Source: Pristiophorus japonicus (Eukaryota). From it: a stretch of 64,000 nucleotides of DNA. Numbering within the stretch: position 1 is the first letter of the stretch; each line of letters opens with the position of its first letter. Position numbers and translations under genes: made by a program. The stretch spans positions 17,484,001 through 17,548,000 of the forward strand of contig NC_091995.1 of NCBI RefSeq assembly GCF_044704955.1. Reading direction: 5' to 3'. This document shows positions 1,735 through 56,388 of the stretch, one piece after another. The notes under the pieces are model-generated. The model saw only the letters and a list, made by a program, of their open reading frames with translations. It did not search any database and was not told where the DNA came from.

Positions 1735-2682
1735 ATGGCAGGACAGCTCGGTCACGTGATATGCTCCTCCTGTACCATGTGGGAACACAGGGACAACACC
1801 AGTGTCCCTGACGACTACATGTGCGGGAAGTGTGTCCACCTCCGGCTACTGACGGTCCGCGTTGCGGAGTTGGAGCTGAAGGTGGATTCACTCTGGAGCA
1901 TCCACGATGCTGAGAATGACATGAGTATCACGTGTAGCGAGTTGGTCTTACTGCAGGAGAAGGGTCCACAGCCAGCGAGGGAATGGAAGACCAGCAGGAA
2001 GAGTAGTGCAAGGAAGGTAGTGCAGGGGTCCCCTGTGGTCATCCCCCTGCAAAACAGATACACCGCTTTGAGTACTGTTGAGGGGGATGACTCATCAGGG
2101 GAGGGCAGCAGCAGCCAAGTTCATGGCACCGTGGCTGGCTCTGTTGCACAGGAGGGCAGGAAAAAGAGTGGAAGAGCGATAGTGATAGGGGATTCAATTG
2201 TAAGGGGAATAGATAGGCGTTTCTGCGGCCGCAACCGAGACTCCAGGATGGTATGTTGCCTCCCTGGTGCAAGGGTCAAGGATGTCTCGGAGCGGGTGGA
2301 GGACATTCTAAAAAGGGAGGGAGAACAGCCAGTTGTCGTGGTGCACGTTGGTACCAATGACATAGGTAAAAAAAGGGTTGAGTTCCTACGAAATGAATTT
2401 AAGGAGCTAGGAGCTAAATTAAAAAGTAGGACCTCAAAAGTAGTAATCTCGGGATTGCTACCAGTGCCACGTGCTAGTCAGAGTAGGAATCGCAGGATAG
2501 CTCAGATGAATACGTGGCTTGAGCAATGGTGCAGCAGGGAGGGATTCAAATTCCTGGGGCATTGGAACCGGTTCTGGGGGAGGTGGGACCAGTACAATCC
2601 GGACGGTCTGCACCTGGGCAGAATCGGAACCAATGTCCTCGGGGGAGTGTTTGCTAGTGCTGTTGGGGAGGAGTTAAACTAA
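1735..2682 (+). CDS. CR1 ORF1p: Cys-rich zinc finger, coiled coil, SGNH/GDSL esterase domain
   Basis: CxxC...CxxC; GDS (VIGDSIVR), GTND and DGLH esterase blocks, typical of CR1 ORF1. Confidence 0.93.
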   Translation: MAGQLGHVICSSCTMWEHRDNTSVPDDYMCGKCVHLRLLTVRVAELELKVDSLWSIHDAENDMSITCSELVLLQEKGPQPAREWKTSRKSSARKVVQGSPVVIPLQNRYTALSTVEGDDSSGEGSSSQVHGTVAGSVAQEGRKKSGRAIVIGDSIVRGIDRRFCGRNRDSRMVCCLPGARVKDVSERVEDILKREGEQPVVVVHVGTNDIGKKRVEFLRNEFKELGAKLKSRTSKVVISGLLPVPRASQSRNRRIAQMNTWLEQWCSREGFKFLGHWNRFWGRWDQYNPDGLHLGRIGTNVLGGVFASAVGEELN

Positions 2683-2759
2683 TATGGCAGGGGGATGGGA
2701 ACCAATGCAGGGAGATAGAGGGAAACAAAAAGGAGGCAAAAACAAAAGACAGAAAGGAG

Positions 2760-5666
2760 ATGAGGAAAAGTGGAGGGCAGAGAAACCCAAGGCAAAGAAC
2801 AAAAAGGGCCATTGTACAGCAAAATTCTAAAAGGACAGAGGGTGTTAAAAAAACAAGCCTAAAGGCTTTGTGTCTTAATGCAAGGAGTATCCGCAATAAG
2901 GTGGATGAATTAACTGTGCAAATAGATGTTAACAAATATGATGTGATTGGGATTACGGAGACGTGGCTCCAGGATGAGCAGGGCTGGGAACTCAACATCC
3001 AGGGGTATTCAACATTCAGGAAGGATAGAATAAAAGGAAAAGGAGGTGGGGTAGCATTGCTGGTTAAGGAGGAGATTAAGGCAATAGTTAGGAAGGACAT
3101 TAGCTTGGATGATGTGGAATCTATATGGGTAGAGCTGCAGAACACCAAAGGGCAAAAAACGTTAGTGGGAGTTGTGTACAGACCTCCAAACAGTAGTAGT
3201 GATGTTGGGGAGGGCATCAAACAGGAAATTAGGGGTGCGTGCAATAAAGGTGCAGCAGTTATAATGGGTGACTTTAATATGCACATAGATTGGGCTAACC
3301 AAACTGGAAGCAATACGGTGGAGGAGGATTTTCTGGAGTGCATAAAGGATGGTTTTTTAGACCAATATGTCGAGGAACCAACTAGGGGGGAGGCCATCTT
3401 AGACTGGGTGTTATGTAATGAGAAAGGATTAATTAGCAATCTCGTTGTGCGAGGCCCCTTGGGGAAGAGTGACCATAATATGGTGGAATTCTGCATTAGG
3501 ATGGAGAATGAAACAGTTAATTCAGAGACCATGGTCCAGAACTTAAAGAAGGCTAACTTTGAAGGTATGAGGCGTGAATTGGCTAAGATGGATTGGCGAA
3601 TGATACTTAAGGGGTTGACTGTGGATGGGCAATGGCAGACATTTAGAGACCGCATGGATGAACTACAACAATTGTACATTCCTGTCTGGCATAGAAATAA
3701 AAAAGGGAAGGTGGCTCAACCGTCGCTATCAAGGGAAATCAGGGATAGTATTAAAGCCAAGGAAGTGGCATACAAATTGGCCAGAAATAGCAGCGAACCT
3801 GGGGACTGGGAGAAATTTAGAACTCAGCAGAGGAGGACAAAGGGTTTGATTAGGGCAGGGAAAATGGAGTATGAGAAGAAGCTTGCAGGGAACATTAAGA
3901 CGGATTGCAAAAGTTTCTATAGATATGTAAAGAGAAAAAGGTTAGTAAAGACAAATGTAGGTCCCCTGCAGTCAGAATCAGGGGAAGTCATAACGGGGAA
4001 CAAAGAAATGGCGGACCAATTGAACAAGTACTTTGGTTCGGTATTCACGAAGGAGGACACGAACAACCTTCCGGTTATAAAAGGGGTCGGGGGGTCTAGT
4101 AAGGAGGAGGAACTGAGGGAAATCCTTATTAGCCGGGAAATTGTGTTGGGGAAATTGATGGGATTGAAGGCCGATAAATCCCCAGGGCCTGATGGACTGC
4201 ATCCCAGAGTACTTAAGGAGGTGGCCTTGGAAATAGTGGATGCGTTGACAGTCATTTTCCAACATTCCATTGACTCTGGATCAGTTCCTATGGAGTGGAG
4301 GGTAGCCAATGTAACCCCACTTTTTAAAAAAGGAGGGAGAGAGAAAACAGGGAATTATAGACCGGTCAGCCTGACATCGGTAGTGGGTAAAATGATGGAA
4401 TCAATTATTAAGGATGTCATAGCAGTGCATTTGGAAAGAGGTAACATGATAGGTCCAAGTCAGCATGGATTTGTGAAAGGGAAATCATGCTTGACAAATC
4501 TTCTGGAATTTTTTGAGGATGTTTCCAGTAGAGTGGATAAGGGAGAACCAGTTGATGTGGTATATTTGGACTTTCAGAAGGCGTTCGACAAGGTCCCACA
4601 CAAGAGATTGATGTGCAAAGTTAGAGCACATGGGATTGGGGGTAGTGTACTGACATGGATTGAGAACTGGTTGTCAGACAGGAAGCAAAGAGTAGGAGTA
4701 AATAGGTACTTTTCAGAATGGCAGGCAGTGACTAGTGGGGTACCGCAAGGTTCTGTGCTGGGGCCCCAGCTGTTTAAACTGTACATTAATGATTTAGATG
4801 AGGGGATTAAATGTAGTATCTCCAAATTTGCGGATGACACTAAGTTGGGTGGCAGTGTGAGCTGCGAGGAGGATGCTGTGAGGCTGCAGAGCGACTTGGA
4901 TACGTTAGGTGAGTGGGCAAATGCATGGCAGATGAAGTATAATGTGGATAAATGTGAGGTTATCCACTTTGGTGGTAAAAACAGAGAGACAGACTATTAT
5001 CTGAATGGTGACAGATTAGGAAAAGGGGAGGTGCAAAGAGACCTGGGTGTCATGGTACATCAGTCATTGAAGGTTGGCATGCAGGTGCAGCAGGCGGTTA
5101 AGAAAGCAAATGGCATGTTGGCCTTCATAGCAAGGGGATTTGAGTACAGGGGCAGGGAGGTGTTGCTACAGTTGTACAGGGCATTGGTGAGGCCACACCT
5201 GGAGTATTGTGTACAGTTTTGGTCTCCTAACCTGAGGAAGGACATTCTTGCTATTGAGGGAGTGCAGCGAAGGTTCACCAGACTGATTCCCGGGATGGCG
5301 GGACTGACCTATCAAGAAAGACTGGATCAACTGGGCTTGTATTCACTGGAGTTCAGAAGAATGAGAGGGGACCTCATAGAAACATATAAAATTCTGACGG
5401 GGTTAGACAGGTTAGATGCAGGAAGAATGTTCCCAATGTTGGGGAAGTCCAGAACCAGGGGTCACAGTCTCAGGATAAGGGGTAAGCCATTTAGGACCGA
5501 GATGCGGAGGAACTTCTTCACACAGAGAGTGGTGAACCTGTGGAATTCTCTACCACAGAAAGTTGTTGAGGCCAATTCACTAAATATATTCAAAAAGGAG
5601 TTAGATGAGGTCCTTACTGCTAGGGGGATCAAGGGGTATGCCGAGAAAGCAGGAATGGGGTACTGA
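2760..5666 (+). CDS. CR1 ORF2p: APE endonuclease plus reverse transcriptase (frame open from at least 2673)
   Basis: NARS, ITETWL, GDFN and SDH endonuclease motifs; [28 protein letters not shown] and FADD RT motifs; no stops over 968 aa. Confidence 0.96.
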   Translation: MRKSGGQRNPRQRTKRAIVQQNSKRTEGVKKTSLKALCLNARSIRNKVDELTVQIDVNKYDVIGITETWLQDEQGWELNIQGYSTFRKDRIKGKGGGVALLVKEEIKAIVRKDISLDDVESIWVELQNTKGQKTLVGVVYRPPNSSSDVGEGIKQEIRGACNKGAAVIMGDFNMHIDWANQTGSNTVEEDFLECIKDGFLDQYVEEPTRGEAILDWVLCNEKGLISNLVVRGPLGKSDHNMVEFCIRMENETVNSETMVQNLKKANFEGMRRELAKMDWRMILKGLTVDGQWQTFRDRMDELQQLYIPVWHRNKKGKVAQPSLSREIRDSIKAKEVAYKLARNSSEPGDWEKFRTQQRRTKGLIRAGKMEYEKKLAGNIKTDCKSFYRYVKRKRLVKTNVGPLQSESGEVITGNKEMADQLNKYFGSVFTKEDTNNLPVIKGVGGSSKEEELREILISREIVLGKLMGLKADKSPGPDGLHPRVLKEVALEIVDALTVIFQHSIDSGSVPMEWRVANVTPLFKKGGREKTGNYRPVSLTSVVGKMMESIIKDVIAVHLERGNMIGPSQHGFVKGKSCLTNLLEFFEDVSSRVDKGEPVDVVYLDFQKAFDKVPHKRLMCKVRAHGIGGSVLTWIENWLSDRKQRVGVNRYFSEWQAVTSGVPQGSVLGPQLFKLYINDLDEGIKCSISKFADDTKLGGSVSCEEDAVRLQSDLDTLGEWANAWQMKYNVDKCEVIHFGGKNRETDYYLNGDRLGKGEVQRDLGVMVHQSLKVGMQVQQAVKKANGMLAFIARGFEYRGREVLLQLYRALVRPHLEYCVQFWSPNLRKDILAIEGVQRRFTRLIPGMAGLTYQERLDQLGLYSLEFRRMRGDLIETYKILTGLDRLDAGRMFPMLGKSRTRGHSLRIRGKPFRTEMRRNFFTQRVVNLWNSLPQKVVEANSLNIFKKELDEVLTARGIKGYAEKAGMGY

Positions 5667-6214
5667 AGTTGAATGTTCAGCCATGAACTCATTGAATGGC
5701 GGTGCAGGCTAGAAGGGCCGAATGGCCTACTCCTGCACCTATTTTCTATGTTTCTATGTTTCTATGTTTCTAATTGTACGGTGTGGTCGAACTAAGGTTT
5801 GATACAGGTTTAGCATAACTTCACTACTTTTCAATTCTATATCACTAAAAATAAACCCTCGTGCTTGGTTTGCTTTTCTTATGGCGTTGATGGCCCGAAT
5901 GCCTACTGTCATCCGAACCTAATTTGATAAATTGAATACTTCGAAATGTTGCTGTAGATACCGCACCACTGCGGTAAGAGTCAATGTTAGACGAAACTAC
6001 TCTCTTATTAACTTGTTAAAATATTGCCATTAATAAAATGTGTACTGTATTGTCACAACATTTCATGCTTTCGTAATTATCTGTATTAGTGATATAATCA
6101 TGTATTATTAGAAAGATAGTGCTAATGTGCTCAATAAAGCGTGCTTGAATAAGCACGTCCTCTCCTCAATGGGCCAATGAATCCTGTCCCAATGCCTTGC
6201 AGAGTAATGTACTT

Positions 6215-8569
6215 AGAAACATAGAAACATAGAAAATAGGTGCAGGAGTAGGCCATTCGGCCCTTCTAGCCTGCACCGCCATTCAATGAGTTCACGGCTG
6301 AACATTCAACTTCAGTACCCCATTCCTGCTTTCTCGCCATACCCCTTGATCCCCCTAGTAGTAAGGACCTCATCTAACTCCTTTTTGAATATATTTAGTG
6401 AATTGGCCTCAACAACTTTCTGTGGTAGAGAATTCCACAGGTTCACCACTCTCTGGGTGAAGAAGTTCCTCCGCATCTCGGTCCTAAATGGCTTACCCCT
6501 TATCCTTAGACTGTGACCTCTGGTTCTGGACTTCCCCAACATTGGGAACATTCTTCCTGCATCTAACCTGTCTAACCCCATCAGAATTTTAAATGTTTCT
6601 ATGAGGTCCCCTCTCATTCTTCTGAACTCCAGTGAATACAAGCCCAGTTGATCCAGTCTTTCTTGATAGGTCAGTCCCGCCATCCCGGGAATCAGTCTGG
6701 TGAAGCTTCGCTGCACTCCCTCAATAGCAAGAATGTCCTTCCTCAGGTTAGGAGACCAAAACTGTACACAATACTCCAGGTGTGGCCTCATCAATGCCCT
6801 GTACAACTGTAGCAACACCTCCCTGCCCCTGTACTCAAATCCCCTTGCTATGAAGGCCAACATGCCATTTGCTTTCTTAACCGCCTGCTGCACCTGCATG
6901 CCAACCTTCAATGACTGATGTACCATGACACCCAGGTCTCTTTGCACCTCCCCTTTTCCTAATCTGTCACCATTCAGATAATAGTCTGTCTCTCTGTTTT
7001 TACCACCAAAGTGGATAACCTCACATTTATCCACATTATACTTCATCTGCCATGCATTTGCCCACTCACCTAACCTATCCAAGTCGCTCTGCAGCCTCAC
7101 AGCATCCTCCTCGCAGCTCACACTGCCACCCAACTTAGTGTCATCCGCAAATTTTGAAGATACTACATTTAATCCCCTCATCTAAATCATTAATGTACAG
7201 TGTAAACAGCTGGGGCCCCAGCACAGAACCTTGCGGTACCCCACTAGTCACTGCCTGCCATTCTGAAAAGTACCCATTTACTCCTACTCTTTGCTTCCTG
7301 TCTGACAACCAGTTCTCAATCCATGTCAGTACACTACCCCCAATCCCATGTGCTCTAACTTTGCACATCAATCTCTTGTGTGGGACCTTGTCGAATGCCT
7401 TCTGAAAGTCCAAATATACCACATCAACTGGTTCTCCCTTATCCACTCTACTGGAAACATCCTCAAAAAATTCCAGAAGATTTGTCAAGCATGATTTCCC
7501 TTTCACAAATCCATGCTGACTTGGACCTATCATGTCACCTCTTTCCAAATGCACTGCTATGACATCCTTAATAATTGATTCCATCATTTTACCCACTACC
7601 GATGTCAGGCTGCCCGGTCTATAATTCCCTGTTTTCTCTCTCCCTCCTTTTTTAAAAAGTGGGGTTACATTGGCTACCCTCCACTCCATAGGAACTGATC
7701 CAGAGTCAATGGAATGTTGGAAAATGACTGTCAACGCATCCACTATTTCCAAGGCCACCTCCTTAAGTACTCTGGGATGCAGTCCATCAGGCCCTGGGGA
7801 TTTATCGGCCTTCAATCCCATCAATTTCCCCAACACAATTTCCCGGCTAATAAGGATTTCCCTCAGTTCCTCCTCCTTACTAGACCCCCCAACCCCTTTT
7901 ATAACCGGAAGGTTGTTCGTGTCCTCCTTCGTGAATACCGAACCAAAGTACTTGTTCAATTGGTCCGCCATTTCTTTGTTCCCCGTTATGACTTCCCCTG
8001 ATTCTGACTGCAGGGGACCTACGTTTGTCTTTACTAACCTTTTTCTCTTTACATATCGATAGAAACTTTTGCAATCCGTCTTAATGTTCCCTGCAAGCTT
8101 CTTCTCATACTCCATTTTCCCTGCCCTAATCAAACCCTTTGTCCTCCTCTGCTGAGTTCTAAATTTCTCCCAGTCCCCAGGTTCGCTGCTATTTCTGGCC
8201 AATTTGTATGCCACTTCCTTGGCTTTAATACTATCCCTGATTTCCCTTGATAGCCACGGTTGAGCCACCTTCCCTTTTTTATTTCTATGCCAGACAGGAA
8301 TGTACAATTGTTGTAGTTCATCCATGCGGTCTCTAAATGTCTGCCATTGCCCATCCACAGTCAACCCCTTAAGTATCATTCGCCAATCCATCTCAGCCAA
8401 TTCACGCCTCATACCTTCAAAGTTAGCCTTCTTTAAGTTCTGGACCATGGTCTCTGAATTAACTGTTTCATTCTCCATCCCAATGCAGAATTCCACCATA
8501 TTATGGTCACTCTTCCCCAAGGGGCCTCGCACAACGAGATTGCTAATTAATCCTCTCTCATTACATAAC
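6215..8569 (-). mobile_element. 5'-truncated CR1 copy, near-identical to 3410-5771, tail-to-tail
   Basis: ORF2 fragments 7141-8532 and 6312-7181 are split by a 1-nt frameshift near 7155; the same 3' tail is present. Confidence 0.95.
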
Positions 8570-11950: not shown

Positions 11951-13315
11951 TTCCTACACTATTGCCATATCCCTTGATTCCCTTAATATCCAAAAATCTG
12001 CCAATCTCTATCATGAATATATTCAACGACTGAGTCTCCACAGCCCTTTGGGTATAGATAACTCCAAAGATTCACCACCCTCTGATTGAAGACAGTTCTC
12101 CTCATCTCAGTCCTAAATGGCTGATCGCTTATTCTGAGACTGTGGCCCCTGGTTCTACACTGCCCATACAGGGGAAATATGTTCGCAGCAGCTAGCCTGT
12201 TAAGACCGGTACGAATTGTGTATGTTTCAATGAGATCATCTCTCAGTCTTCTAAACTCAGTAGTACAACTTCATGAATGGGAAATATATTTCAAAGCTCT
12301 TCCCAAAATATCAGCCATAATTTGAGCAATATGTCAATCTCGAAGTATACTATTAATACTGAACGCGTGGCGATGAACCTAAACCAGATCTCTCACACTG
12401 GACAGGTTGTTATCTGATCGTTAATCCTTGCCTCATCTCTAGCTTGCAACTTTTACACACCATATTGCAATCTTTCTCTTCTCTCCCTATTTCATCGATG
12501 TCACTATTGTCGCTGTTGCCCCTTTATGTAACCTCCCTGGTTTCTCTTAACCATAAATTGCCCAATTCTGCACGCCTCCCTGCAACCTCACCCTGTTGAA
12601 ATCAAGACCGTTGCACAGAGTTCTATTTTATTGGGATGCCAAAACTGTGAAACGCCTTACCCCCATGAAATAATTGACGCCAATGGGGCGTAAAATAAGA
12701 GAAGGTGCAATCGGATGCAGGACCGAACCCGAGCCATTCCCGCCAGGCAGGCTAAATTACAATTAGAGCTCAAGGACCCCTCCCCCCAAATGTAGCTACA
12801 TGCTTTGCGACCGTTTTACTTACTCACCTTTCCGTTCGTTCAACAATTGTTCCATATCACGTCTTCCGCTGCCTCTTACATAAGAGCTACCTGCAAAATA
12901 AGTCTACTGTTGCTTCTATTCAACAGATGGAAACAAACGAATTATGGAAAGGTGAAACAAGAAGAATAAAAGTTGGAAATAGACTACAGTTCACTAAGCA
13001 TCTGAAAGAGAAAGACAGGTTCGTGATTATGGGATTGTTCGTCCGCACAGCTACTTATATTAAGTTTGACATTAACATAATCCATTGACACCTGCTCACC
13101 GAGCGAAACGGTAGATTCAGACATTTTATTCAGTAGGAAATAGGACAGGAATAAATTAGTGTGTTCAATACATTGCAGATACACAGAATAGCTGTGGACA
13201 TTTCACTCCGTTACCTCATATCCTGCCGTGTCTAACCTCACAGCGCAGGTGCACAATGGCATTAATGACCCGATTCTCCAAAAGCGTGTTATGTTGCTAC
13301 GGTACTGCAGCAGTA

Positions 13316-13349
13316 ATGAACTCAATCTGGATATGGACCTTTACTTGCG
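13316..13349 (+). CDS. Gene 1 (NCR3/NKp30-like) exon 1, leader: MNSIWIWTFTC(V)
   Basis: gcagtaATG start and a phase-1 donor G|GTAATT. Joined to the V exon it gives the signal-peptide-like MNSIWIWTFTCVTTVAA-ETITV. In-frame upstream ATGs at 13256 and 13265 are alternative starts. Confidence 0.65.
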
Positions 13350-14189
13350 GTAATTAGTTACTTTTTCAAAAAAGAAAATAGAGAGGCGCGGATAAAGCCA
13401 AACGAATAAAGAGTTTATTCATATTGCGCTACCCAATTGAAATAGTGAACAATTATTATTTTATCAACTGCTACTTGATCAGGGACAACAGAACCCAGAG
13501 TCTGTGTATCTATCTTTTTTACACGCTGTGTACTTTGTCCATGATCGCATTATTTTAGAATGTAATTTTTTTCCTCATTCCTTAGTTGCAGCTAGATGGG
13601 AGTTGATCGCAGTTTCAGTGCGCATTACTCTCTTGTAATGTGCAATTTCAAATGTTATCTGTAAGTTTGTGAATGTGGCATGGTTTGCAATGCGGATAGA
13701 AATAGGCTGAGCAACGATGCTGGCGTCCAACTGCAGTCCCCTTTGCTATTTTTAGAATTTTAAAATGTGGATTTAATAGAAATGACACTTTTATCACCGA
13801 TTTGAGAGTTTCATGTAGATAGATAGAAATATGGACAGTTGAATTGATAAAAATTGGGGTAGATATATAGACAAATTGATTCATCCATCCATCAATCCAG
13901 ACATCGAGATGGCAAGGTAGATCTGTAGCTACGAACACTTGAAACATTGTGATGCATGTCTATACATAGCTGGTTTGGATTGCTACTGATTATATTTTTT
14001 ATTAAATTTGTTCGGCTGTAAGTTTCAGAACAGTTCAGCTGATGCAATAGCTTAGCTCCAAACAGCATCAATCAGCAACAGAGCAGTTGTTGGATTAAAT
14101 AGCAGAGTGACGATTAAATGCGCGCACTCTTCCATTCTTCTTCACAACTCACCATGTATAAATATTAATGAAGGGTATCAGATGAAAGG

Positions 14190-14555
14190 TGTGAAAAATA
14201 GGTGATCTGAACGAGGTTTTCAAGATATTAAGGGGAACAGATAAGGTAGCTAGAGATAAACTATTTCCGCTGGGTGGGGAGTTTAGGGGGAATAGTCTAA
14301 AAATTAGAGCTAGACCTTTCGGGAGTGAAATTAGGAAACACTTCTACACACAAAGGGTTGTAGAAGTTTCGAACTCTCTTCTGCAAGGTAATTGTTCATT
14401 TTACATTGGAGTTTGAAAGCTTTCTGTTGATCAAAGGTATTAAGGGATATTGGCCAAAGGCGGGTATATGGAGTTAGGTCGCAGATCAGCCATTAAATGG
14501 TGGAGCAGGCTCGAGGAGCTGAATGGCCTCTTCCTGTTCCTATGTTTCTATGTGT
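14190..14555 (+). mobile_element. CR1 3' fragment
   Basis: Degenerate ORF2 C-terminus and 3'UTR tail. Confidence 0.7.
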
Positions 14556-14959
14556 GGAAATAAGCCCATATGGAGCATAAACGCCAGTTAAACCAGTTGG
14601 GTTGAATGGCCTGTTTCTGTGCGGTAGACTCTATTCAATTCCATGTGACTATGTTAATCAACTAATAGCTCCTTTAGTGTATCATTTTTGCTTTGATGCC
14701 ATGCGGTGCTCAGCAATGCAATGAGATGGAAATGATAGCAAGACTGTTATTACAAAAGCAACATTATTACTATTACACTCTGCAGGAGGGTTGGGGGGTG
14801 GAGCGGCGACGGAGGGTGGTACAGTCTCACCGATTGAGCAGTGTACTTTACCACCTTCAGTGTCATTTAAATGCTGCACACATAGATTTATGCAGCCATA
14901 TGTTTCTATCACATGAACCGAAAAATATTTTTAACCTCAAACCTTCTTCATTTACACAG

Positions 14960-15304
14960 TTACGACCGTTGCTGCGGAAACTATCACAGTAATTCAAATC
15001 CCAACCTTTGTGAATGCTACGGAGGGACAGAAGGTGGATTTGTTTTGCACGTATACTGGTCCTTTAGGGATCGGTGAGTACGTATGGCACAAGATCACTA
15101 AAGATGGATTGGTAGTCACCGAAACAATTGTGAAATACAGCGGTCGGGTGTCTCGGGCAAGTGTGGAAGATTTCAGAAAGTTGAGGGACGCTTCCATTAA
15201 AATCATGGATGTGAGACAGTATGATTCCGGCATCTATTATTGCACAGTGGAACTAATGGGATTCGAGAAAATCCACGGAGCAGGAACAACACTCAATGTA
15301 GCGC
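14960..15304 (+). CDS. NCR3: Gene 1 exon 2: VJ-type IgV domain, NKp30/NCR3-like
   Basis: Acceptor tttacacag| and donor C|GTGAGT, phase 1-1. Has the B-strand Cys (LFC), Trp (IGEYVW), YSGRV, DSGIYYC and a germline J-like HGAGTTLNV. Colinear with human NKp30 as recalled (IGSVTW...FRGRL...DASIYVCRVEVLG...GNGTRLVV). The symbol indicates family, not orthology. Confidence 0.88.
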
Positions 15305-15476
15305 GTGAGTGCATTTTTTTGCTTTTGTATTGAGGATTGAATTACTGCATAAGAGGCACACGGATACCGGTTTGTTATAAGTCAATATATGAAAGAATGT
15401 CTGTACACGGAGATGACTGCATTAGGAAGAAGTGCCTAGCGTGAAATAATACTCAGTTACTGTAGCGGATGGTTGC

Positions 15477-15498
15477 ATCTATCTATCTATCTATCTAT
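15477..15498 (+). repeat. (ATCT)n microsatellite
   Basis: atctatctatctatctatctat. Confidence 0.85.
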
Positions 15499-16799
15499 GC
15501 TACAGCATCGAAGAAAGAACGCGAGGTAAGAGGGACAAAAGTGAGAAAGGATAAATCGAAGTACAGAATGAAAATCACAGAAAGAAAATTAAAGCAAATA
15601 TTTCATATTGTGCATTTGTTTTAAGTTTTCTAATCACACAATTAGTATCCCACAACTAGAGATAAGATTGCAGTTGATCACAACATCAAGAGTTGCTAGA
15701 AACTAACAATAAAAAGGCAAAATTAGTTGCAGAAAGTTGCAGGAAATTAATGAAATATATGTCTAAGGATAACTAACATATGTAGAATAGCGCAATAAAT
15801 AACACCGTTGATCAACAAAACCAAGAAATATAACTGACAGCAGATCAGTGAGGTGGATTTTGGTCTTTACCGTTTGGGTGTTCAACATCGACTGGCGGAG
15901 CCCAGAACGGAAAATCTGGCAGGGAGCTTCACAAGACGCTTGCAGAAGCCCCCGGATTGTTTTTCCATTAATTTTAAAGGGAGGAAATCTGTTTTTTTGC
16001 CGCGGGACCATCCTCGCCGATTTTACGGTTAGGTGCTCCGCCCCAGCGATTATTTAATGTATTTAATTATTTAATGCAGGGGTTGGGCAACAATGACGCA
16101 GCCGAATTGATTGTCCATCGCTGCCGCCTTGAGAAGCAATGTTGTAGTTTCTAAGATAGTGATAGAATAAAGTGGTGTGCGGGAGGGTTGAGCGAGGGAG
16201 GAAGGATTGTGCGTGTGATTGCTAGGAGGACTGCTTGAATATACTAGAGTCCATGGGGCAATTTTAACCTAATCTGCCATTCGAGAAACTGGAGCAACTC
16301 TGAGGTTATACCCCTAATTTTGCCTTTTCATTGAACTCAGAGTTCCACTCGATCCTGAAGGTTTCCCTCCGCGTGAGTTAATTAAATCTGCCCCAATATA
16401 TGGCTGTGAAACAGAAATTGGATATAGGTATGAGAGAATCGAGGAGAGAGATAAACTGTGCTTTTGAGAACGGGGCAGATATAAAGAAGGCGAAGAGGTG
16501 ATTTGCTGGAGGTGTTTACAATCTTGAAGAGTTTAGATACAGTAAATAAAGATAAACTGTCTCCACTGGCTAAAGGGTTGATAACCGCAGCTTTAAGATG
16601 ATTGGTAAAATAATTAGAGGCGACATGAGGGAAAACCATTCTCCAAAACGAGTGGTTAGGATTTGGAATGCACTGCCTGAACGTGTGAATACAGATTCAA
16701 TAGTAGCCTTCAAAAGGGAATTGGATAAATTCTTAAATGAGAAAAAATTGCAGGAATATGGAGAAAGAGCAGGGAAGTGGGGTCAACTAGACTCTTCAA

Positions 16800-17250
16800 G
16801 TGGCAGCTGTGGCTCAGTTGGTAGCATGCTCGCCTCTGAATCAGAAGATTGTGGGTTCAAGACCCCTCCAGGAACATAAATCTAGATTGACACTCGCAGT
16901 GTAGCGTGGAGGGAGGCTGCAATGTCGGAGGTGCTGTCTTTCGGCTGAGACAATAAACCGAGTCCTGTCTACTCTCTCAGGTGGACTCAAAAGATCCCAT
17001 GGCATGATTTCGAAGAAGAGCACGGGAGTTATTCCCGGTGTCCATTTCAATATTTATCTCTAAACATCACAAAAACAGATTATTTGGTCATTATCACATT
17101 GCTGTTTGTGGGAGTTTGCTGCGTGCAAGTTGGCTGCTGCGTTTCCCACATTACAAAAGTGACTACACTCCAAAAGTACTTCATTGGCTGTAAAGCGCTT
17201 TGAGACGTCTGGTGGAACTGCATGACGCTGTATAAATGCAAGTCTTTCTT
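16800..17250 (+). mobile_element. tRNA-derived SINE (DeuSINE/SacSINE1-like)
   Basis: A box TGGCTCAGTTGG and B box GGTTCAAGACCC; core and tail shared with copies at 40553, 56013 and 59955. The family name is tentative. Confidence 0.8.
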
Positions 17251-18045
17251 AGAAACATAGAAAATAGGTGCAGGAATAGGCCTTTCGGCTCTTTGAGTCT
17301 GCACCGCCATTCAATGAGTTCATGGCTGAACATGCAACTTCAGTATCCCATTCCTGCTTTCTCGCCATACCCCTTGATTTCCCTAATAGTAAGGACTACA
17401 TCTAACTCCTTTTTGAATATATTTAGTGAATTGGCCTCAACAACTTTCTGTGGCAGAGAATTCCACAGGTTCACAACTCTCTGGGTGAAGAAGTTTCTCC
17501 TCATCTCGGTCCTAAATGGTTTACCACTTATCCTTAGACTGTGACCCCTGGTTCTGGACTTCCCCAACATTGGGAACGTTCTTCCTGCATTTAACCTGTC
17601 GAAACCCGTCAGAATTTTAAATGTTTCTATGAGATCCCCTCTCATTCTTCTGAACTCCAGTGAATACAAGCCCAGTTGATCCAGTCTTTCTTGATATGTC
17701 AGTCCCGCCATCCCGCGAATCAGTCTGGTGAACCTTCGCTGCACTCCCTCAATAGCAAGAATGTCCTTCCTCAAGTTAGGAAACCAAAACTGTACACAAT
17801 ACTCCAGGTGTGGCCTCACCAAGGCCCTGTACAACTGTAGTAGTACCTCCCTGCCCCTGTACTCAAATCCCCTCGCTATGAAGGCCAACATGCCATTTGC
17901 TTTCTTAACCGCCTGCTGTACCTGTATGCCAACCTTCAATGACTGATGTACCATGACACCCAGGTCTCGTTGCACCTCCCCTTTTCCTAATCTGTCACCA
18001 TTCAGATAATAGTCTGTCTCTCTTTTGTGGTAAAAACAGAGAGAC
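17251..18045 (-). mobile_element. CR1 3' fragment of the young family, with a short 5' inversion
   Basis: ORF 17340-17975 matches the ORF2 C-terminus; TSD-like TCTTTCT at 17244-17250 and 18047-18053. Confidence 0.9.
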
Positions 18046-18388
18046 TTCTTTCTAGAGTACTCTTCGAAAGAGCAGGCGCAGACTCCATGGGCCGAAGGGC
18101 TTCCTTTTATTCTGCATTATTCTATGATTCTATGGTGTGCATATGACGGGGATTTGTTGGAGTAGATAATTATTTTCGTCCCATTCTTTATGTCGCCAGA
18201 GCAGAGGCAATCTCTCCAGACACATCTACGTGGTCACTACACATAGCAGTTAGTGAATTTTTAAACAATTGGGTGTGACACTCCCAAAATCTAAGATGCA
18301 ATTGGGCGCTTTGGGATGAAACACAAATACTGAGTGCGTTTTTGAGGCGGGAGAGAGAAGAAAATGATTATCCTTTTTTTCACTGTAG

Positions 18389-18526
18389 GTCAGATTGATA
18401 GAACTGAAACACCCGTTAATAACCAAGATGGACTCAGAGGTATTATGCTTGGTGGTGCGGGAGGAATGGCAATTATGCTGATCACTTTTGCAATTGTGCG
18501 CATTGTGCGTTCTTGTGAAAATAGAG
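18389..18526 (+). CDS. Gene 1 exon 3: stalk plus transmembrane (QIDRTETPVNNQDGLRGIMLGGAGGMAIMLITFAIVRIVRSCENR)
   Basis: Acceptor ttttttcactgtag| and donor G|GTAATT, phase 1-1. Hydrophobic segment with an N-terminal Arg as in NKp30, and GxxxG motifs. Confidence 0.85.
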
Positions 18527-18687
18527 GTAATTACAAATTACATAGAAAGATAATGTACTGTTTCTAGCTATAATTGCAGCATCCTTACAGAACTCATGTT
18601 AACAACAAACAGTTCCAATTCACACAATTAAATGGAGGAAAGAATACTTTAAATCTGCTAATCTTGCTGCATTTGTATTCTTTGCAG

Positions 18688-18709
18688 TAGCCACTGAACA
18701 GCCACAAAG
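18688..18709 (+). CDS. Gene 1 cytoplasmic micro-exon (VATEQPQ)
   Basis: ttctttgcag| acceptor and AG|GTTGGT donor, phase 1-2, open frame. An alternative donor lies at 18714. Confidence 0.65.
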
Positions 18710-18797
18710 GTTGGTAACACTCAAAATTACTGGTTTATATTTATGGAATGTAGTTCGGAAACAACTTTCGCATCTTTCTTCTTTTGGTGTCTTGCAG

Positions 18798-18826
18798 TTT
18801 CATCGAGCTTTCCGATAAGGTTAAAG
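18798..18826 (+). CDS. Gene 1 cytoplasmic micro-exon (SFIELSDKVK)
   Basis: gtcttgcag| acceptor and G|GTAAGC donor, phase 2-1, open frame. Confidence 0.7.
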
Positions 18827-18929
18827 GTAAGCATGATGTATGGATAATCGGATTCAGGTTGTGTTCTAGGCTAAAGTTTAAATGAGTACATCATCTAGTA
18901 ATTTTCAAATAATTACTTGAATGGTTGCC

Positions 18930-19900
18930 GCAAGGAAGAGGGCCATTCTGCCCGTTGAGCCTCTGCAAGAGTATTTCAGCTAGTTCCACTCCTCCCACCT
19001 TTTTCCTGTAGCCCTGCAAATCTTTTTATTTCAGGTATTTATCCAATTCCCCCTTGAAAGCAATGATTGAGTCTGCCTCCACCACTTGTACATTCCAGAT
19101 CCTAACCACTCGCAACATAAAAAAGTTTTCCTTATGTAGCCTTTGGTTCTTTAACCAATCACCTTAAATCTGTGCCCTCTAATTCTCGACCATTCTGCCA
19201 ATGGGAAGAGTGTTTCTCTATCTACTCTGTCGAGACCCCTCATGATTTTGAACATTATCAAATCTCCTCTCAACCTTCTCTATTCTAAGGAGAACAACCC
19301 CATCTTCTACTGTCTATCCATGTAACTGAAGTCCCTCATCCCTGGAATAATTCTCGTAAATCTTTTTTGTACCGTCTCCAAGGTTTTCAAATCCTTCCTA
19401 AAGTGCGTTGCCCAGAATTGGACACAATACTCCAGTTAACCAGTGTTTTATATAGGTTCATAATAATTTGCATGCTTTTGTACTCTATACCTCTATTCAT
19501 GAAACCCAGTATCCTGTAAGGTTTTTTTAACTGCTTTCTCAAACTGCCCTGCCACCTTCAACAATTTGTGCACATATACCCCTTGGTCTCCCTGTTCATG
19601 CACCCCCTTTAGGATTGTACCCGTTAGGTTAGATTTTCTCCCCTCATTCTTATACCAAAATGTGTCTCTGTGCACCTTTCTGCATTAAAATATATCTACC
19701 ACGCATCAATCCATTCCACCAGCCTGTCTATGTCCTCTTGAAGTCTATCACTATCCTACTCACTGTTCACTATACTTCCAGGTTTTGTGTTATCTGCAAA
19801 GTTTTAAATTATGCTCGGTACAGCCACATACAAGCCATATATATCAAGAATAGCAAGGGTGCTAGTACTGACCCCTTGGGAACACCACTGTATATTTGAT
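18930..19900 (-). mobile_element. Old CR1-like LINE 3' fragment
   Basis: Degenerate RT C-terminus (KVAGQFEKAVKK) and 3'UTR. Confidence 0.75.
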
Positions 19901-20589
19901 AGAACTTTTCTGTTTGCTTGTTTGCCTTTGGTTTGCAGACATTATCCATTTTAATTTATACCACATTTCTCTTGCTGAGGTTATGGTTCCTCCCAGGAAA
20001 TGCCAACTGATCCTGTTGTCACCTGATATTCACACTTTTAGCTGTCCGACAGGCATTAAAGGGTAACAGCAAGGGCCAGTAAACCTGGCTCTCTAGTGCA
20101 TGGACCACAATTGCAGAACTATTGTGGGTCATAAATACAAGATAGTTACTAATAAATCCAGTAGGGATATAAGGAGACATGTTTTTACTTAGTGTGGTTA
20201 GAATGTGGAACTCGCTACCAGAGGAAGTTGTTGAGGGAAAATAGCTTAGATGCTTTCAAAAGGAAACTAAACAAATACACAAGAGAAGAGGGGACAGAAA
20301 GATGCTGAAAGGCTGAGATGATGTAGATGCAATGGGAAGTGATTCGTGTGGAGTATACACACCAGTACAGACTAGTTGGGCTGAATGGCCTGTTTGTGTG
20401 CTTTATATTCTGTGTAATTCTGTTCACCACAAGCCAGCAACTGGAGCGGAGACTTTCGAGCATAATTTCCTGTTTGGTGTTTCTGGGCCAAGCCCAGGTA
20501 TTCATTGGCGCTAAACCAGGGAAGAATATCCATGACCAATTTCTGCTCCATCTCAAGTGCACATTAAAATAGAAAGCACGCTGCTCAAC

Positions 20590-20960
20590 CAAAAGGCAGA
20601 TAGTGGAGGCACTTTTACTGATTTCAATGGGTCGCTTCTAGGAGATCTGGACTACCAACTCTTAACTTGGTTGCGGCTTCAGGTAATGAGGTGGAGCAGA
20701 GGTGCACTGAAGTTTATGTCCTGCAATGTAATACGGGAAAGATATACACGGTCATAGTTTCCTGCTGTGTGCTGCACAACCAAGCCATTAACAGGGGAAT
20801 CCATGGAGTAGCGAGAAGTGGAGCTGGCAGAGGAGAAACATGAGGATTTGGAAGACGAGGAAGATGTGACTGCAGCAGATCGTAGGGCTGTTGGGCTGTT
20901 ACTTGCTGAAGCATCAGGAGAAAGGCTATCTTGGAAATCTTCTCATGTCATTCAGAATAA
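20590..20960 (+). mobile_element. PIF/Harbinger transposase C-terminal remnant
   Basis: From 20751 reads VIVSCCVLHNQAINRG (Harbinger CCxLHN motif), preceded by a SRGALKF segment and followed by an acidic stretch. Confidence 0.65.
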
Positions 20961-21119
20961 CCCCTCGAGTCCATTCATTCCTCGTCAACTTCCACTCAAA
21001 TAAAGACAACCCTGGAAAGCAGAATCTGCGTCCATCTACAGTCCTTGCAACATTAATTAATCTATTGTAAAAATAGCCTCAACTCCCAGTAGCACCTAAA
21101 GGGCTTTGCCCAAAGCATA

Positions 21120-21900
21120 ATACTCATCAGTTGACTGGATGAGTGCAGCTCCAAGCACACATAAGAAGTTCGACACTATCCAGGACAAAACAACCAGCTT
21201 GATTGGCACCACATCTACTATCTTAAACATTGACACCCTCCACCACCGGCGCACCGTGGCTGCAGTGTGTACCATCTACAAGATGCTCTGCAGCAACTCA
21301 CCAAGGCTTCTTCGGCAGCACCTCACAAACCCGCGAACTCTACCACCTAGAAGGACAAGGGCAGCAGGCACATGGAAACACCACTACCTCCAAGTTCCCC
21401 TCCAAGTCACACTCCATCCTGACTTAGGTATATATCGGCCATTCCTTCATCATCGATGGGTCAAAAATCCTGGAACTCAGGATGAGTTGTCCCGAACCAG
21501 GGGGGTCACAGTCTCAGAATAAGGGGTTGACCATTTAGGACTGAGATGAGGAGAAACCTCTTCACTCAGAGGCTGGTGAATGTTTGGAATTCTCTACCCC
21601 AGCGAGCTGTGGAGGCTGTCTTTGAGTATATTCAAGACAGAGATCAAATGTTTTTTGGGGGCATTAAGAGAATCAAGGGATATGGGGATAGTTTAGGAAA
21701 GTGGAGTTGAGGTAGAAGATCAGCCATCTTGCTCCTAATGACTATGTTCTTATATTCTAACTCCCTCCCCAACAGCACTGTGGGAGCACCTTCACCACAC
21801 AGAATGCAGCAGTTCAAGAAGGCGCTACCTTCTCAAGGGCAATTAGGGATGGGCAATAAATGCTGGTCTTGCCAGCGATGCGCACACCGTAGGAATGACT
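21120..21900 (+). mobile_element. Non-LTR retrotransposon 3' fragment with a nested CR1 3' piece (~21490-21755)
   Basis: DTIQDK...LHHRRTVAAVCTIYKM is a LINE C-terminal motif; related fragments lie at ~57000 and ~58530. Confidence 0.65.
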
Positions 21901-22467
21901 ACAAAAATAATCAGCAGTCAGTGCATTTATTGGAAAGAAATCCGAAACGATGCTTCCCCTTTCTGCCAATGGCCATATTTTGTACATAGTCAATTAGTTC
22001 CTACTGTCTTCAAGCTGGCACATTGCATTAGGCCAGCTTCAGACTGCAGCTCATCTACTGGTGTGGAAACCCAAGCCCTGGCTCATGCGGAAATTCAACC
22101 CTTAAATGTGTACAGATTGCCTACAGGGCTGTTTGTGCACTGCATCAATTTGAAATAACTTTCGGTAGATTTATCAAGTGTCACAGAGATCCAATAATGC
22201 TCGCACACACCATATAAACCACTTTTCTAATGGAACTGGAGTCAACCCCAAAGTCAAGCCCTCCAGGGTGTCACACGCTGCTTCTCTGTGGACTTCATTC
22301 TAATCCAACTCTTAATTTTATTAGCACTCATTTAGCTACTGTCCTAATATATTGCATTAGACCACACGGTCCTAAGTTCTATGGTTATTATTACACTGTA
22401 TTGCAAGGTATGGTTGCATGTTTTATAACAGTGCTCTTACAAATTATGTGGTTTAATTTCATGTAAG

Positions 22468-22514
22468 ACATGGAGGACTGCAGCCCAATGTCTCAATCCA
22501 AAGATCAGCATCAG
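22468..22514 (+). CDS. Gene 1 cytoplasmic micro-exon (DMEDCSPMSQSKDQHQ)
   Basis: tttcatgtaag| acceptor and CAG|GTATGT donor, phase 1-0. Confidence 0.6.
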
Positions 22515-22630
22515 GTATGTATCATAATAGCCGAAGTCAAGTATTTAACTTACAATAAGCACACAGATGTGTTCTCATTTCTCATCACTGATTTTATTTT
22601 TACATTTCTACACGTTAAAATGACATAAAG

Positions 22631-22674
22631 GTCCATAGAGCAGAATATCCGTATTTAATAAAAATAGAACCGAG
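22631..22674 (+). CDS. Gene 1 cytoplasmic micro-exon (VHRAEYPYLIKIEP)
   Basis: First AG after a long AG-free pyrimidine tract; donor AG|GTAAGA; phase 0-2; contains YPYL. Confidence 0.55.
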
Positions 22675-23667
22675 GTAAGATTTTTGTGGCTGTTCTCCCA
22701 ATTTTCCACTGAAACCTTGGCGGAAACCCAAGAGAAAGGTTGGAAAATTGGCAGAACAGCCATGACAATTCTTTTCCTTGATGTCTTTGTTCAGCTCAGC
22801 CCGGACTTGGGGGTTTCTCCTCCTGTGCTGGCTGGTCTGCAACCTTTGCATTCCTTCTATTTTCTTTGTTAACTTCCCTTCTACAGTGATTAGAAATGGA
22901 GTGTGTTGAGCATAGCATGACTCCCAAGTCTCTTTGTACATCGTCCCCAACCAAACTCAAAACCATTGATTGACGGAAGCAAGTCTTCAATTGGTCTTCC
23001 AATGTGAAAGACACCTATATGGGATTACTCACTTGCAAATGCTCTTTGGTTATTTCTGTAATGCCTTGGCTGCTTTTTCAAACTATATGCTTCCTGCCAC
23101 TGTTTAGTGCCAGCTGTAAATTTCGTCAATTTTTATTGCGTTTCCAACTTCAGGTCAATTTGATAGATAAGGAGATGTTAGGGTTCCCCCAATCAAGCAC
23201 CATGAGTCTCCTCCAAATACATCTCAAGCTGGTGTTATTTAGCTAAGCAATACCAACTGCTCAACTGTTAACCACATCCCAGTTTTTCCCAGGATAAACC
23301 GTGTGCAGCTTTTCACGTGGAACTCCAACAAAAGCTTTCTGGAAGAATTGGCAGACTGGCTTTGAATCACTTTGGGTGTTCTAACCATCCTGTGCTGCAA
23401 CTGTGGTGGAAGATCGGCGGAAACAATTGCAAAATTACATCAACAGCATTTATACAGTTTTCCAGGGGTTTTCCTGAATTTGCGCTGAAGTTACGGTGAA
23501 TGATTGGGAGGAGAGGTGTAGAAATTGAAAACCACTGTAATTGGGCTTTGAAACATTAATTTGCTATGCTATTTGTTAACAAGTTACACAATTGAATGTT
23601 TCAGATGCTAACTGATGTCCTCTCTGCTTTATTTAAATTGAGATAGTAATATTTGCTATTGGAACAG

Positions 23668-23707
23668 AGGCGTTAACTCATCGATAATTTTGGGTGATTG
23701 CAAAAGG
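23668..23707 (+). CDS. Gene 1 cytoplasmic micro-exon (RGVNSSIILGDCKR)
   Basis: ggaacag| acceptor and AGG|GTATCT donor, phase 2-0. It restores frame between the flanking exons, but the splice sites are weaker. Confidence 0.45.
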
Positions 23708-23814
23708 GTATCTAATGTGAAATGGGTTGACACCTCAATCAACATAAGCTTGTATCTATTGATGATCAGCTGTTTATTCTACTTAAATGTTTGCGCACAT
23801 CTTATTTTCGTTAG

Positions 23815-23856
23815 GAGCACCTTATTTATCCATCCACGTCTCAACAAGTGTATTCG
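23815..23856 (+). CDS. Gene 1 cytoplasmic exon (EHLIYPSTSQQVYS), first half of ITAM
   Basis: cttattttcgttag| acceptor and TCG|GTAAGA donor, phase 0-0. Confidence 0.75.
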
Positions 23857-24089
23857 GTAAGAATATTTTTCCTTGCAGTTCTTCAACAGGGCAATCAAGT
23901 ATTATATGTGAGTTACTTTACTGTGAAGTGAAATAGAATCTAAAACCATCAATTAATTAGGGGTTTACCTTTCCCCCAATTCCCTACCCACCTCTCTTGG
24001 AGATTATGTGGCTGTGGGGGAGGAGGAGATAGCTATGAGAGTCCAGCCATCCTGATGTGGGGCAGGCTTATTGGACCAACTTGTCTTTT

Positions 24090-24850
24090 CATAGAAACAT
24101 AGGAACAGGATTGGGCCATTGAACCCCTTGAGCCTGTTCCGCCATTCAATGAGATCATGGCTGATCTGCGACTTTACTCCATAGACCCGCCCTTTCCCCA
24201 TACCCCTTAATACCATTGGTTAACAAAAATCTATCAATCTCAGATTTGAAATTAACAACTGATTGAGCATCAATTGCCGTTTGCGGAAAAGAATTCCAAA
24301 TTTCCACCACCCTTTGCGTGTAGAAGTGATTCCTAATTTCACTCCTGAAAGGTCTGGCTCTAATTTTTAGATTATGCCCCTAGTCTTGGACTCCCCAACC
24401 AATGGAAATCGTTTGTCACTATCTTTGTTCCCCAAAATATTCTGAAAACTTTAATCAAATCACCCGTTTATCTTCTAATTCTTGGGAATACTTGGGAATA
24501 CAAATCTAATTTGTGTAATCTCTCCTTGTAACTTAACTCGTGGAGTCCGGGTGTCATTCTGGTATACTTACGCTGCATTCCCTCCAAAGGCCAATATATC
24601 ACCCTAAAGTTTGGTGCAAGAACTGCTCACAGTACACCAGGTGTGGTCTAACCAGGGCTTTGTTTAGCTGCAGTATAAACATTACCCCCTTGTTCTCTAG
24701 TCCTCTAGATATAAATGCCAGCATTCCATTAGCCTGTACCTGGGGTCATGACATTCTAATGATATATGTGCCTGAACCTCCAAGTGTCTTAGGACCTCCA
24801 TTGCTTTTTTTAAAAGCTTTTCTCCATTTAGAAAATACCCATATTCCTGC
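24090..24850 (-). mobile_element. Old CR1 3' fragment
   Basis: CR1 3'UTR and degenerate RT tail. Confidence 0.75.
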
Positions 24851-25210
24851 CCGTCATTTTCATATTTAAGTGCCCCATGCTGCAGCAGCAGGTCATGTGT
24901 ATCTCACTCTCATCACCATTTTTCGCCTGTAACCTTAGAGAGGGCTGGGCTATCTGCCTCCGACAGCCAGTTTCTCGATGGATTTGGGTTGGCTAGAGGC
25001 AGAAAGCTCGTGAGAAATATGGTCCGGGGTGCACAGCGAGACCTGCGCTGCCTCTTTCCAGAGACATTGGAGCACAATACGCAAGTAACATTCGACCATT
25101 AATAATAAGATGCCGCTCACAATGCAGATGCATACTCCGTTAAGTTTTGAAGCGATTGCAAATGAACTTCCGGTCTGAACTTTTAATACAGCTCTGTTTT
25201 TTTTCCAAAG

Positions 25211-25270
25211 GAGTTGCGGAAACAAGATGTATCATTTTATAGCGAGCTGCACAGGTACTTTCTTGTGTAA
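25211..25270 (+). CDS. Gene 1 ITAM exon (ELRKQDVSFYSELHRYFLV*)
   Basis: ctgttttttttccaaag| acceptor, phase 0. Completes YSEL-x7-YSEL. Reads through to TAA at 25268-25270, or splices at AG|GTACTT (25254) to a later terminal exon. Confidence 0.78.
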   Translation, partial: ELRKQDVSFYSELHRYFLV

Positions 25271-25669
25271 TGTCACAATTCTTGCTTGAAGAAAAATAAA
25301 TGACAATGGTGAAAAAGATCTTGACAATAAAAGTTAATATTGAAGGTTTCAAATTTAAATTCGACCCTGCTCCGCTATTCAATGAGACCATGGCTGATCT
25401 TCGAACTCAACACTTTCCGCCCCAATCCCCATATCCCTTAATTTCTGTAAAGTCTAAAATCTATCTTTTTCAGCCTTGAATATACTAGACGCCTCAGCAT
25501 TCACAACCCGTTGGGGTAGATAATTCCAAAGATTCACAACTCTGTGAGTGAAGAAATTCCTCCTCATCTCAGTCTTAAATGGACGACCCCTTATCCTGTC
25601 ACTATGCCCCCTAGTTCTAGACTCTCCACCCAGGGGAAACAATCTCTCAGTATCGGTGTATTTACATAA

Positions 25670-40093: not shown

Positions 40094-40431
40094 GACGAAC
40101 GTTTGGAAACCTCACAGTAATGGAAATCCCGCTCTCGGTTATTACAACTGAAGGCGAGACTGTGGTCCTAAACTGCTCGCATAACGGACCAGCCGGGATA
40201 GCCGCATACACATGGTATCTAAACATTCCAGATGGGACTGAGGTGACAACAAAACATCACAGTATACAGGACGCGTGTTTCGAGCGGATTTGAAGGCTTT
40301 CTTCGAAAGAAACCACGATTCACTACAAATAGCAGACAGCAAGTTGGTTGATTCAGGAACCTATTATTGCAAAGTGGAACACGTGGAATGCGGGGAAACA
40401 TATTGACCAGGGACAAGCCTTACTGTAACAA
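40094..40431 (+). pseudogene. Gene 2: NCR3-like IgV exon, inactivated
   Basis: atatagcag| acceptor and A|GTAAGT donor. Reads NLTVMEIPLSVITTEGETVVLNC...AYTWY, then after a 1-nt deletion near 40249 continues KTSQYTGRVFRADLKAFFERNHDSLQIADSKLVDSGTYYCKVEHVECGETY*PGTSLTVT. TGA at 40404-40406 replaces the first Gly of the GxG motif. Confidence 0.88.
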
Positions 40432-40552: not shown

Positions 40553-40990
40553 AAGAAAAGAAGACTTGCATTTATAGAATGCGTTTCCTGACCACCAGGG
40601 TCCCAAAGCGTATGTTGAAGTGTAGTCACTGTTGTAACGTAGGAAATACAGCAGCCAACCTTCACACAGCAAGCTCCCACACACAGCAATGTGATCATGA
40701 CCAGATAATCTGTTTTAGTGATGTTGATTAAGGGGTACATATTGGCCAGGACACCGTGTCTCACTCCTCTGCTCTTCAAAAAAGTTCCTTGGGATATTTT
40801 ACGTCCACCCGAGAGAACGTTGATTTAATGTCTCATCCAAAAGGCGGCACCTCCGAAAGAGCAGCAACCCCTCAGTACTGCACTGGGAGTGTCAACCTAG
40901 ATTTTTGTGCTCAGGTCTCTGTGGAGTGGGAACTTGAACCCACGACCTTGTGCGTCAGAGCTGATGGTGCTACGAATTGAGCCACTTGCT
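40553..40990 (-). mobile_element. tRNA-derived SINE
   Basis: Reverse complement of the 16800 SINE, including the A and B boxes. Confidence 0.8.
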
Positions 40991-56012: not shown

Positions 56013-56388
56013 TCAGCTGTGGCCTGGTGGGTCAGAAGGTTGTGGGATCAAATGCCACACCAGGGAATTACTGAGGGAGTGCTGCACTGTCGGAAGAGAA
56101 GTTAAAGCGAGGCCCTGTCTGCTCTCTCAAGTGGACGCAAAAGATCCCATGACACTATTTCGCAGAAGAGCAGGGAATTATTTATCCCTCAATCAACATA
56201 ACAAAAACAGATGACATTGTCATGATCACATTGCTACTTGTGTGAGCTTAGTGTGCGCAAATTGGCTGCCGCGTTTCCCACATTACTACAGTGACTACAC
56301 TCCAAAATTACTCAATTGCCTGTGAAGCACTTTGAGACATCCGGTGGTCGTGAAAGACGCTATATAAATGCAAGTCTTTCTTTCTTTT
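56013..56388 (+). mobile_element. tRNA-derived SINE
   Basis: Homologous to 16800-17250. Confidence 0.75.

Follow-up and report, generated by a model that had tools for sequence, protein, structure and literature searches.

In the genome of the sawshark Pristiophorus japonicus, a window of 64,000 nucleotides (RefSeq assembly GCF_044704955.1, contig NC_091995.1, positions 17,484,001 to 17,548,000 of the forward strand; positions below are counted from the first letter of this whole stretch) harbours what is almost certainly an intact-looking shark immune-receptor gene of the NKp30/NCR3 family. Its first three exons, for the leader, a variable (V) domain and a transmembrane (TM) helix, are real and lie far beyond what chance would produce. 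Predicted micro-exons further downstream most likely make up the cytoplasmic tail. We see about an even chance that a transcript encodes, as modelled from the sequence, an activation motif of the immunoreceptor tyrosine-based type (ITAM) at the end of this tail.

The receptor gene and its relatives

The core of the gene is exon 2 (Table 1), in which the entire V region and a J-like GAGTTLNV sequence are found in one exon, and which matches the Pfam V-set family at 8e-11. In exons 2 and 3 only the required reading frame is open. Their splice sites lie between the 97th and the 99.9th percentile, where percentiles, here and below, are ranks among all AG/GT sites in the window, scored with approximate vertebrate matrices. 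The leader together with the start of exon 2 is similar to relatives' leader sequences, which continue into ...ITVIQ. An out-of-frame upstream ATG is located 25 nt 5' of the start codon and opens, by eye, a short open reading frame (ORF) across the exon 1 donor (13291-13350, plus strand).

The TM core in exon 3 comprises about 19-20 residues (IMLGGAGG...FAIV), with a hydropathy peak of 2.18 over the 19-residue core. An initial annotation of this DNA, made from the letters alone, had described a TM segment with an arginine and a GxxxG motif. Two tandem GxxxG motifs are indeed present, but the arginines only flank the core, at its outer edge (GLRG) and at its inner edge (RIVRS). The hydrophobic core itself is free of arginine, and an arginine inside the membrane was therefore rejected. 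The arginines at the edges are not conserved in the closest relatives either, which leaves the proposed recruitment of an adaptor through a TM arginine a weak suggestion.

The assignment to the NCR3/NKp30-like family is supported by sequence, by fold and by named relatives. Human NKp30 is the best PDB sequence match of exon 2 (3e-7), and its 33.6 bits exceed the 29 bits of SIRP by a modest margin. In structure, the margin is clear. An AlphaFold model of the V domain, with a predicted local distance difference test (pLDDT) score of 93.7, has NKp30 chains as its top four Foldseek matches (best 3noi, TM-score 0.84, root-mean-square deviation 1.7 A), while the match to the SIRP fold has a TM-score of 0.76 and a deviation of about 4. 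With the Pfam domain, the top matches in sequence and fold and the NCR3-named relatives all pointing in the same direction, the NKp30-like non-rearranging variable-joining (VJ) receptor of the initial annotation is supported.

In a HMMER scan against 1.84 billion representatives, 356 matches were obtained. When the V domain is compared with chondrichthyan NCR3 proteins, as had been suggested at the outset, the nearest protein is the "NCR3-like" XP_067865360 of the horn shark Heterodontus francisci, with 61% identity in V. Identity in V amounts to 51-62% for a catshark protein with two V domains and to 48% for nurse-shark NCR3 (QTT61898.1); an elephant-shark NCR3 fragment is 51% identical. Frog NCR3-like proteins are also among the nearest relatives, and one Pristiophorus japonicus protein is found among the matches of the searches. 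The NCR3 names of these relatives are automatic annotation, the nurse-shark entry excepted. A protein search with the V exon alone returned nothing within its length range, and a search with the family profile returned five proteins only. The NKp30/NCR3 family in sharks is already published for nurse shark, reportedly by Kinlein et al. 2021 (Immunogenetics 73:333), and the sawshark gene adds to this known family no more than one new member, which may be a new variant.

The shark relatives (nurse-shark NCR3 and the "NCR3-like" proteins of Heterodontus, Carcharodon and Scyliorhinus) have the same single germline-joined VJ exon for an immunoglobulin V (IgV) domain, are type I TM proteins and likewise belong to a large tandem cluster. 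While their V domains are 48-61% identical to that of the sawshark gene, their TM and tail sequences are unrelated to it. The tails contain motifs resembling the immunoreceptor tyrosine-based inhibitory motif (ITIM) or the corresponding switch motif (ITSM), contain an acidic YxxI motif, or are short; no ITAM is present among the fetched single-V relatives. An alignment of isoforms indicates that the horn-shark relative has eight predicted ones, with NAGNAG variants, skipping of the TM exon and alternative last exons. Because these isoforms vary in the TM exon and in the last exons, tails of such complexity are the norm in this family.

Human NKp30 (PDB 3noi, 3pv6, 6yjp), the best match of the V domain by sequence and by fold, has the same arrangement of a single V domain, a stalk and a TM segment. 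It is without a signalling motif, and its TM arginine pairs with CD3-zeta/FcR-gamma (PMC6514059). In the sawshark gene, in contrast, the arginines are situated at the TM edges and the predicted tail is long.

The predicted tail and its putative terminal ITAM

The initial annotation had joined ten phase-compatible exons into an ORF of 801 nt and 266 amino acids. The lengths of these exons fix nine of the ten exactly, with AG/GT at every border; the remaining one, the 40-nt exon 8, is not unique. Five AG..GT candidates exist for it (22795-22834, 23114-23153, 23668-23707, 23749-23788 and 23770-23809). Upon concatenation of the exons, each of them leads to an 801-nt ORF of 266 codons, and all five have mediocre splice sites. 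The splice sites of exons 4, 5, 9 and 10 rank at or above the 96th percentile. Every tail exon is shorter than 61 nt and, unlike the front exons, the tail exons are not far beyond chance. An alternative donor of exon 4 at 18714 scores -1.2, versus 2.0 for the donor at 18709, and its use brings a stop within exon 5, as had been foreseen. The tyrosine motifs that had been pointed out, YPYL in exon 7, IYPS in exon 9 and the terminal YSEL-x7-YSEL, are all present in the model. If exons 7 and 8 are skipped together, the frame of the ITAM is still kept.

In phase 0, exon 9 ends in ..SQQVYS and exon 10 reads EL-x7-YSEL, which together give YSEL-x7-YSEL, a canonical YxxL-x7-YxxL pattern (ITAM spacers measure 6-8 residues, classically 7); the pattern holds only if 23856 joins 25211 in this phase. 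The predicted border, YS/EL in phase 0, places an intron within the first tyrosine module, and in classical ITAMs an intron always splits this module (Guselnikov and colleagues, PMC4536121). Of the initial claim that the receptor has its own ITAM, the canonical spacing and the classical position and phase of the split stand, but the motif rests on the predicted 23856-25211 junction and on the frame of exon 9. The two YSEL copies are not a recent DNA repeat, since their Ser and Leu codons differ. The predicted reading ends in a stop codon, with two AATAAA signals within 60 nt of that stop. The peptides of the tail exons were compared singly with 150 relatives, and the window with 159 fetched proteins; short YSE[L/I] matches apart, nothing above chance level was obtained.

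How often such a motif arises fortuitously was estimated from a scan that took in every strong donor-acceptor pair of the window, 2,791 in total over the two strands. Apart from the predicted one, three further independent ITAM-like patterns spanning a junction were found. Scaled to the 252 strong pairs in the 11-kb stretch downstream of the TM exon, about 0.09 patterns with a canonical split are expected by chance, which is suggestive of a genuine motif but short of decisive.

Several observations weigh against the ITAM-bearing transcript as modelled. The acceptors of exons 6 and 7 are weak, and exon 8, as described above, has no unique solution. The acceptor AG of exon 6 lies inside a GTAAG that itself scores as a donor, and the acceptor of exon 7 is at the 32nd percentile by the local matrix, or at the 86th once a long upstream pyrimidine tract free of AG is taken into account. 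A dynamic-programming search for exon chains starting from exon 5 reached exon 9 in all three phases; because this crude search gives similar scores in the three, the frame entering exon 9 is not fixed by sequence alone. The residue at position -3 of the first tyrosine is Gln, versus D/E/N in the consensus (PMC4536121), and one of the three further patterns in the window has the canonical split by chance, on the minus strand. A second donor of exon 9, at 23907, scores 3.09 versus 3.21 for the one at 23856, and the resulting 93-nt reading of this exon is open. Among 179 fetched proteins no relative has a similar tail, and most have ITIM-type tails. Finally, a search of sequencing runs with the V exon listed no RNA run, which is not proof of absence.

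The surroundings of the exon 9 donor contain a strong acceptor at 23879, 22 nt past this donor, in addition to the strong donor at 23907 (both on the plus strand). The two ends ..QQVYS/gtaaga and ..NQVLY/gtgagt resemble a small tandem duplication of an exon end.

Table 1. Exons and associated features of the NKp30/NCR3-family gene (positions in the window)
Feature	Position	Strand	Remarks
Exon 1	13316-13349	+	start codon, greater part of the signal peptide; phase 1 at its end; donor 94th percentile
Exon 2	14960-15304	+	germline-joined VJ-type IgV; Cys-Trp-Cys core, YYC, GAGTTLNV; phase-1 introns on both sides
Exon 3	18389-18526	+	stalk, TM helix with two tandem GxxxG, basic stop-transfer RIVRSCENR; acceptor 99.9th, donor 97.8th percentile
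Exon 4 (22 nt)	18688-18709	+	first predicted tail micro-exon; acceptor 99th, donor 96th percentile; sole open frame is that dictated by exon 3
Exon 5 (29 nt)	18798-18826	+	predicted; acceptor 97.7th, donor 99.9th percentile
Exon 6 (47 nt), uncertain	22468-22514	+	donor 99.7th, acceptor weak, 64th-72nd percentile; all three frames open
Exon 7 (44 nt), uncertain	22631-22674	+	contains YPYL; donor 99.8th percentile; sole open frame is that set by exon 6
Exon 8 candidate, most protein-like	23668-23707	+	sole candidate that is polar and has no open frame but the required one
Exon 9 (42 nt)	23815-23856	+	predicted; IYPS, then YS of the first ITAM module; acceptor 97th, donor 97.8th percentile; all three frames open
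Possible exon 9 extension	23857-23907	+	second donor at 23907; in frame; removes first YxxL
Exon 10	25211-25270	+	predicted; EL, seven-residue spacer, YSEL, HRYFLV, stop; acceptor 97th-99th percentile
Two AATAAA polyadenylation signals	25295-25331	+	25 and 56 nt past the stop

Rival readings and a proposed mechanism

It is conceivable, though we consider it unlikely, that a real tail has an inhibitory or ambiguous character. Exon 10 would then be the terminal tyrosine-motif exon usual for the family, joined from the donor at 23907 or from another upstream exon, and the protein would contain a single ITIM-like motif for SHP-type phosphatases and no ITAM. With the 23907 donor, which scores the same as that at 23856 and keeps the frame, the remaining motif SFYSEL fits the ITIM pattern S/I/V/LxYxxI/V/L. 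ITIM/ITSM-type tails are found in most relatives. Furthermore, frog NCR3-like proteins have a C-terminal YSE[L/I] and end in ...YSEIP, and the DVSLYSEI of Xenopus is close to the sawshark DVSFYSEL. Against this, exon 10 opens with xL exactly seven residues ahead of YSEL, and the nearest strong upstream donor has Tyr-x before it in phase 0, which is the classical ITAM split. As a rough estimate, the probability of this coincidence under the inhibitory reading amounts to about 0.06 x 0.15.

A short-tailed receptor, ending after the TM exon or, through the 18714 donor, at the stop in exon 5, seems improbable. The micro-exons would in that case be chance ORFs, and signalling, if any, would proceed through an adaptor as in mammalian NKp30. 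In favour of such a protein, read-through of the exon 3 donor runs for 13 codons to a stop, with an ATTAAA at 18627 (18527-18632, plus strand), tiny exons are easily found by chance, and a catshark relative with a similar V domain combines a short tail with an arginine in the TM segment. These arguments are countered by the very strong sites of exons 4 and 5, by exon 4 being open only in the required frame, by the weakness of the 18714 donor and by the lack of arginine in the TM core.

Also improbable is a silent or decaying gene within a cluster of rapid turnover; its V and TM exons would be intact yet unexpressed, or found in non-productive transcripts only. In favour of this reading are the lack of a listed RNA run with the V exon, a dead V paralogue 25 kb downstream and introns crowded with LINE and SINE copies (long and short interspersed elements). 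The protein collection, which does include one or more sawshark proteins, yielded no annotated protein of this gene. Against it, all three large exons are open and have strong splice sites, and a missing run is not evidence of absence.

In the reading that we prefer, with the ITAM at the end of the tail, the signal peptide, the single germline-joined VJ IgV domain, the short stalk and the glycine-rich TM helix are followed by a predicted tail, in which the last two exons together would encode a classical ITAM (YSEL, seven residues, YSEL). Binding of a ligand might cluster the receptor, upon which Src-family kinases could phosphorylate both ITAM tyrosines. Syk/ZAP-70 would then dock via its tandem SH2 domains, and neither CD3-zeta nor FcR-gamma would be needed to activate the cell. 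What is observed are the V and TM exons and the family placement, while we infer the splicing of the tail, the expression and phosphorylation of the receptor and its ligand.

One could speculate, at a very low probability, that this single locus switches the sign of its signalling by the choice of 5' splice site. The donor at 23856 would yield the ITAM, that at 23907, lying 51 nt downstream, only the terminal ITIM-like SFYSEL, and 18714 or read-through of exon 3 a short tail without motif, giving activating, inhibitory and adaptor-type isoforms, respectively.

Genomic surroundings and comparison with ITAM receptors

The window contains this gene, one dead V exon and repeats. The dead exon is a second NKp30-like VJ exon at 40111-40427 (plus strand) that shares 39-46% identity with that of the gene. 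Its frame is shifted between 40248 and 40260, a stop interrupts its J motif, and a self-comparison of the window revealed no paralogous copies of exons 3-10 near it. It probably represents a pseudogene exon.

Much of the intron sequence consists of repeats, none of which overlaps a predicted exon. An apparently intact LINE at 1735-5666 (plus strand) has an ORF1 of 315 amino acids with a GDSL-esterase domain and an ORF2 of 968 amino acids with endonuclease and reverse transcriptase. Truncated copies of the reverse transcriptase or the endonuclease are found at 7141-8532, 43240-44457 and 47388-48005 (all minus strand) and at 54820-55371 (plus strand). A repeat of about 780 nt is present in two inverted copies (4980-5756 and 6222-6998), each 94.6% identical to a copy in intron 2 (17250-18026), and further copies are located at 41305-42494; the repeat family appears to be young. 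Intron 2 also contains a SINE-like element (16801-17250, plus strand) with a head that is tRNA-like by eye and with copies at 40615-40985, 56079-56382 and 59953-60509. ARAGORN called no tRNA on the head at about 16.8 kb.

Classical ITAM subunits (CD3, CD79, FcR-gamma, DAP12 and TCR-zeta) serve as adaptor chains; their TM segment has an acidic residue, and their ectodomain is small or absent. In the sawshark model, unlike in these subunits, the predicted motif resides on the ligand-binding chain and has Gln as its -3 residue; like the classical ITAMs, it has the x7 spacer and a phase-0 intron inside the first tyrosine module. A V ectodomain and a cytoplasmic ITAM of its own are combined in one chain in teleost NILT proteins (for example carp NILT1), in a few NITRs and in CEACAM3-type ITAM-like receptors, all of the immunoglobulin superfamily and from families that are mostly ITIM-bearing (PMC3022915). 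These receptors belong to other V lineages, NKp44-like or CEACAM, and none to the NKp30 family. Among the fetched proteins, ITAM-like strings occur only in the catshark two-V protein, where the string is not conserved, and in a multi-V protein of the bamboo shark Chiloscyllium (XP_043552676). The latter ends in YMPL-x7-YSEL, and its second half, D.S.YSEL, resembles sawshark exon 10. It differs, however, in having six or seven antigen-receptor-like V domains, which are only about 31% identical to the sawshark V.

The gene is of value for comparative immunology, but it introduces no new principle, as teleosts and mammals are known to have ITAM receptors made of a single chain. NKp30 is the one natural-killer receptor that can be followed between sharks and humans; its VJ domain serves as a proxy for the ancestor that antigen receptors had before rearrangement. 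Families of paired activating and inhibitory receptors are common. If the modelled tail is true, ligand binding and ITAM signalling can share one chain in the NKp30 lineage, and the family would diversify by swapping sets of tail exons, for an ITIM, an acidic YxxI motif, a short tail or an ITAM.

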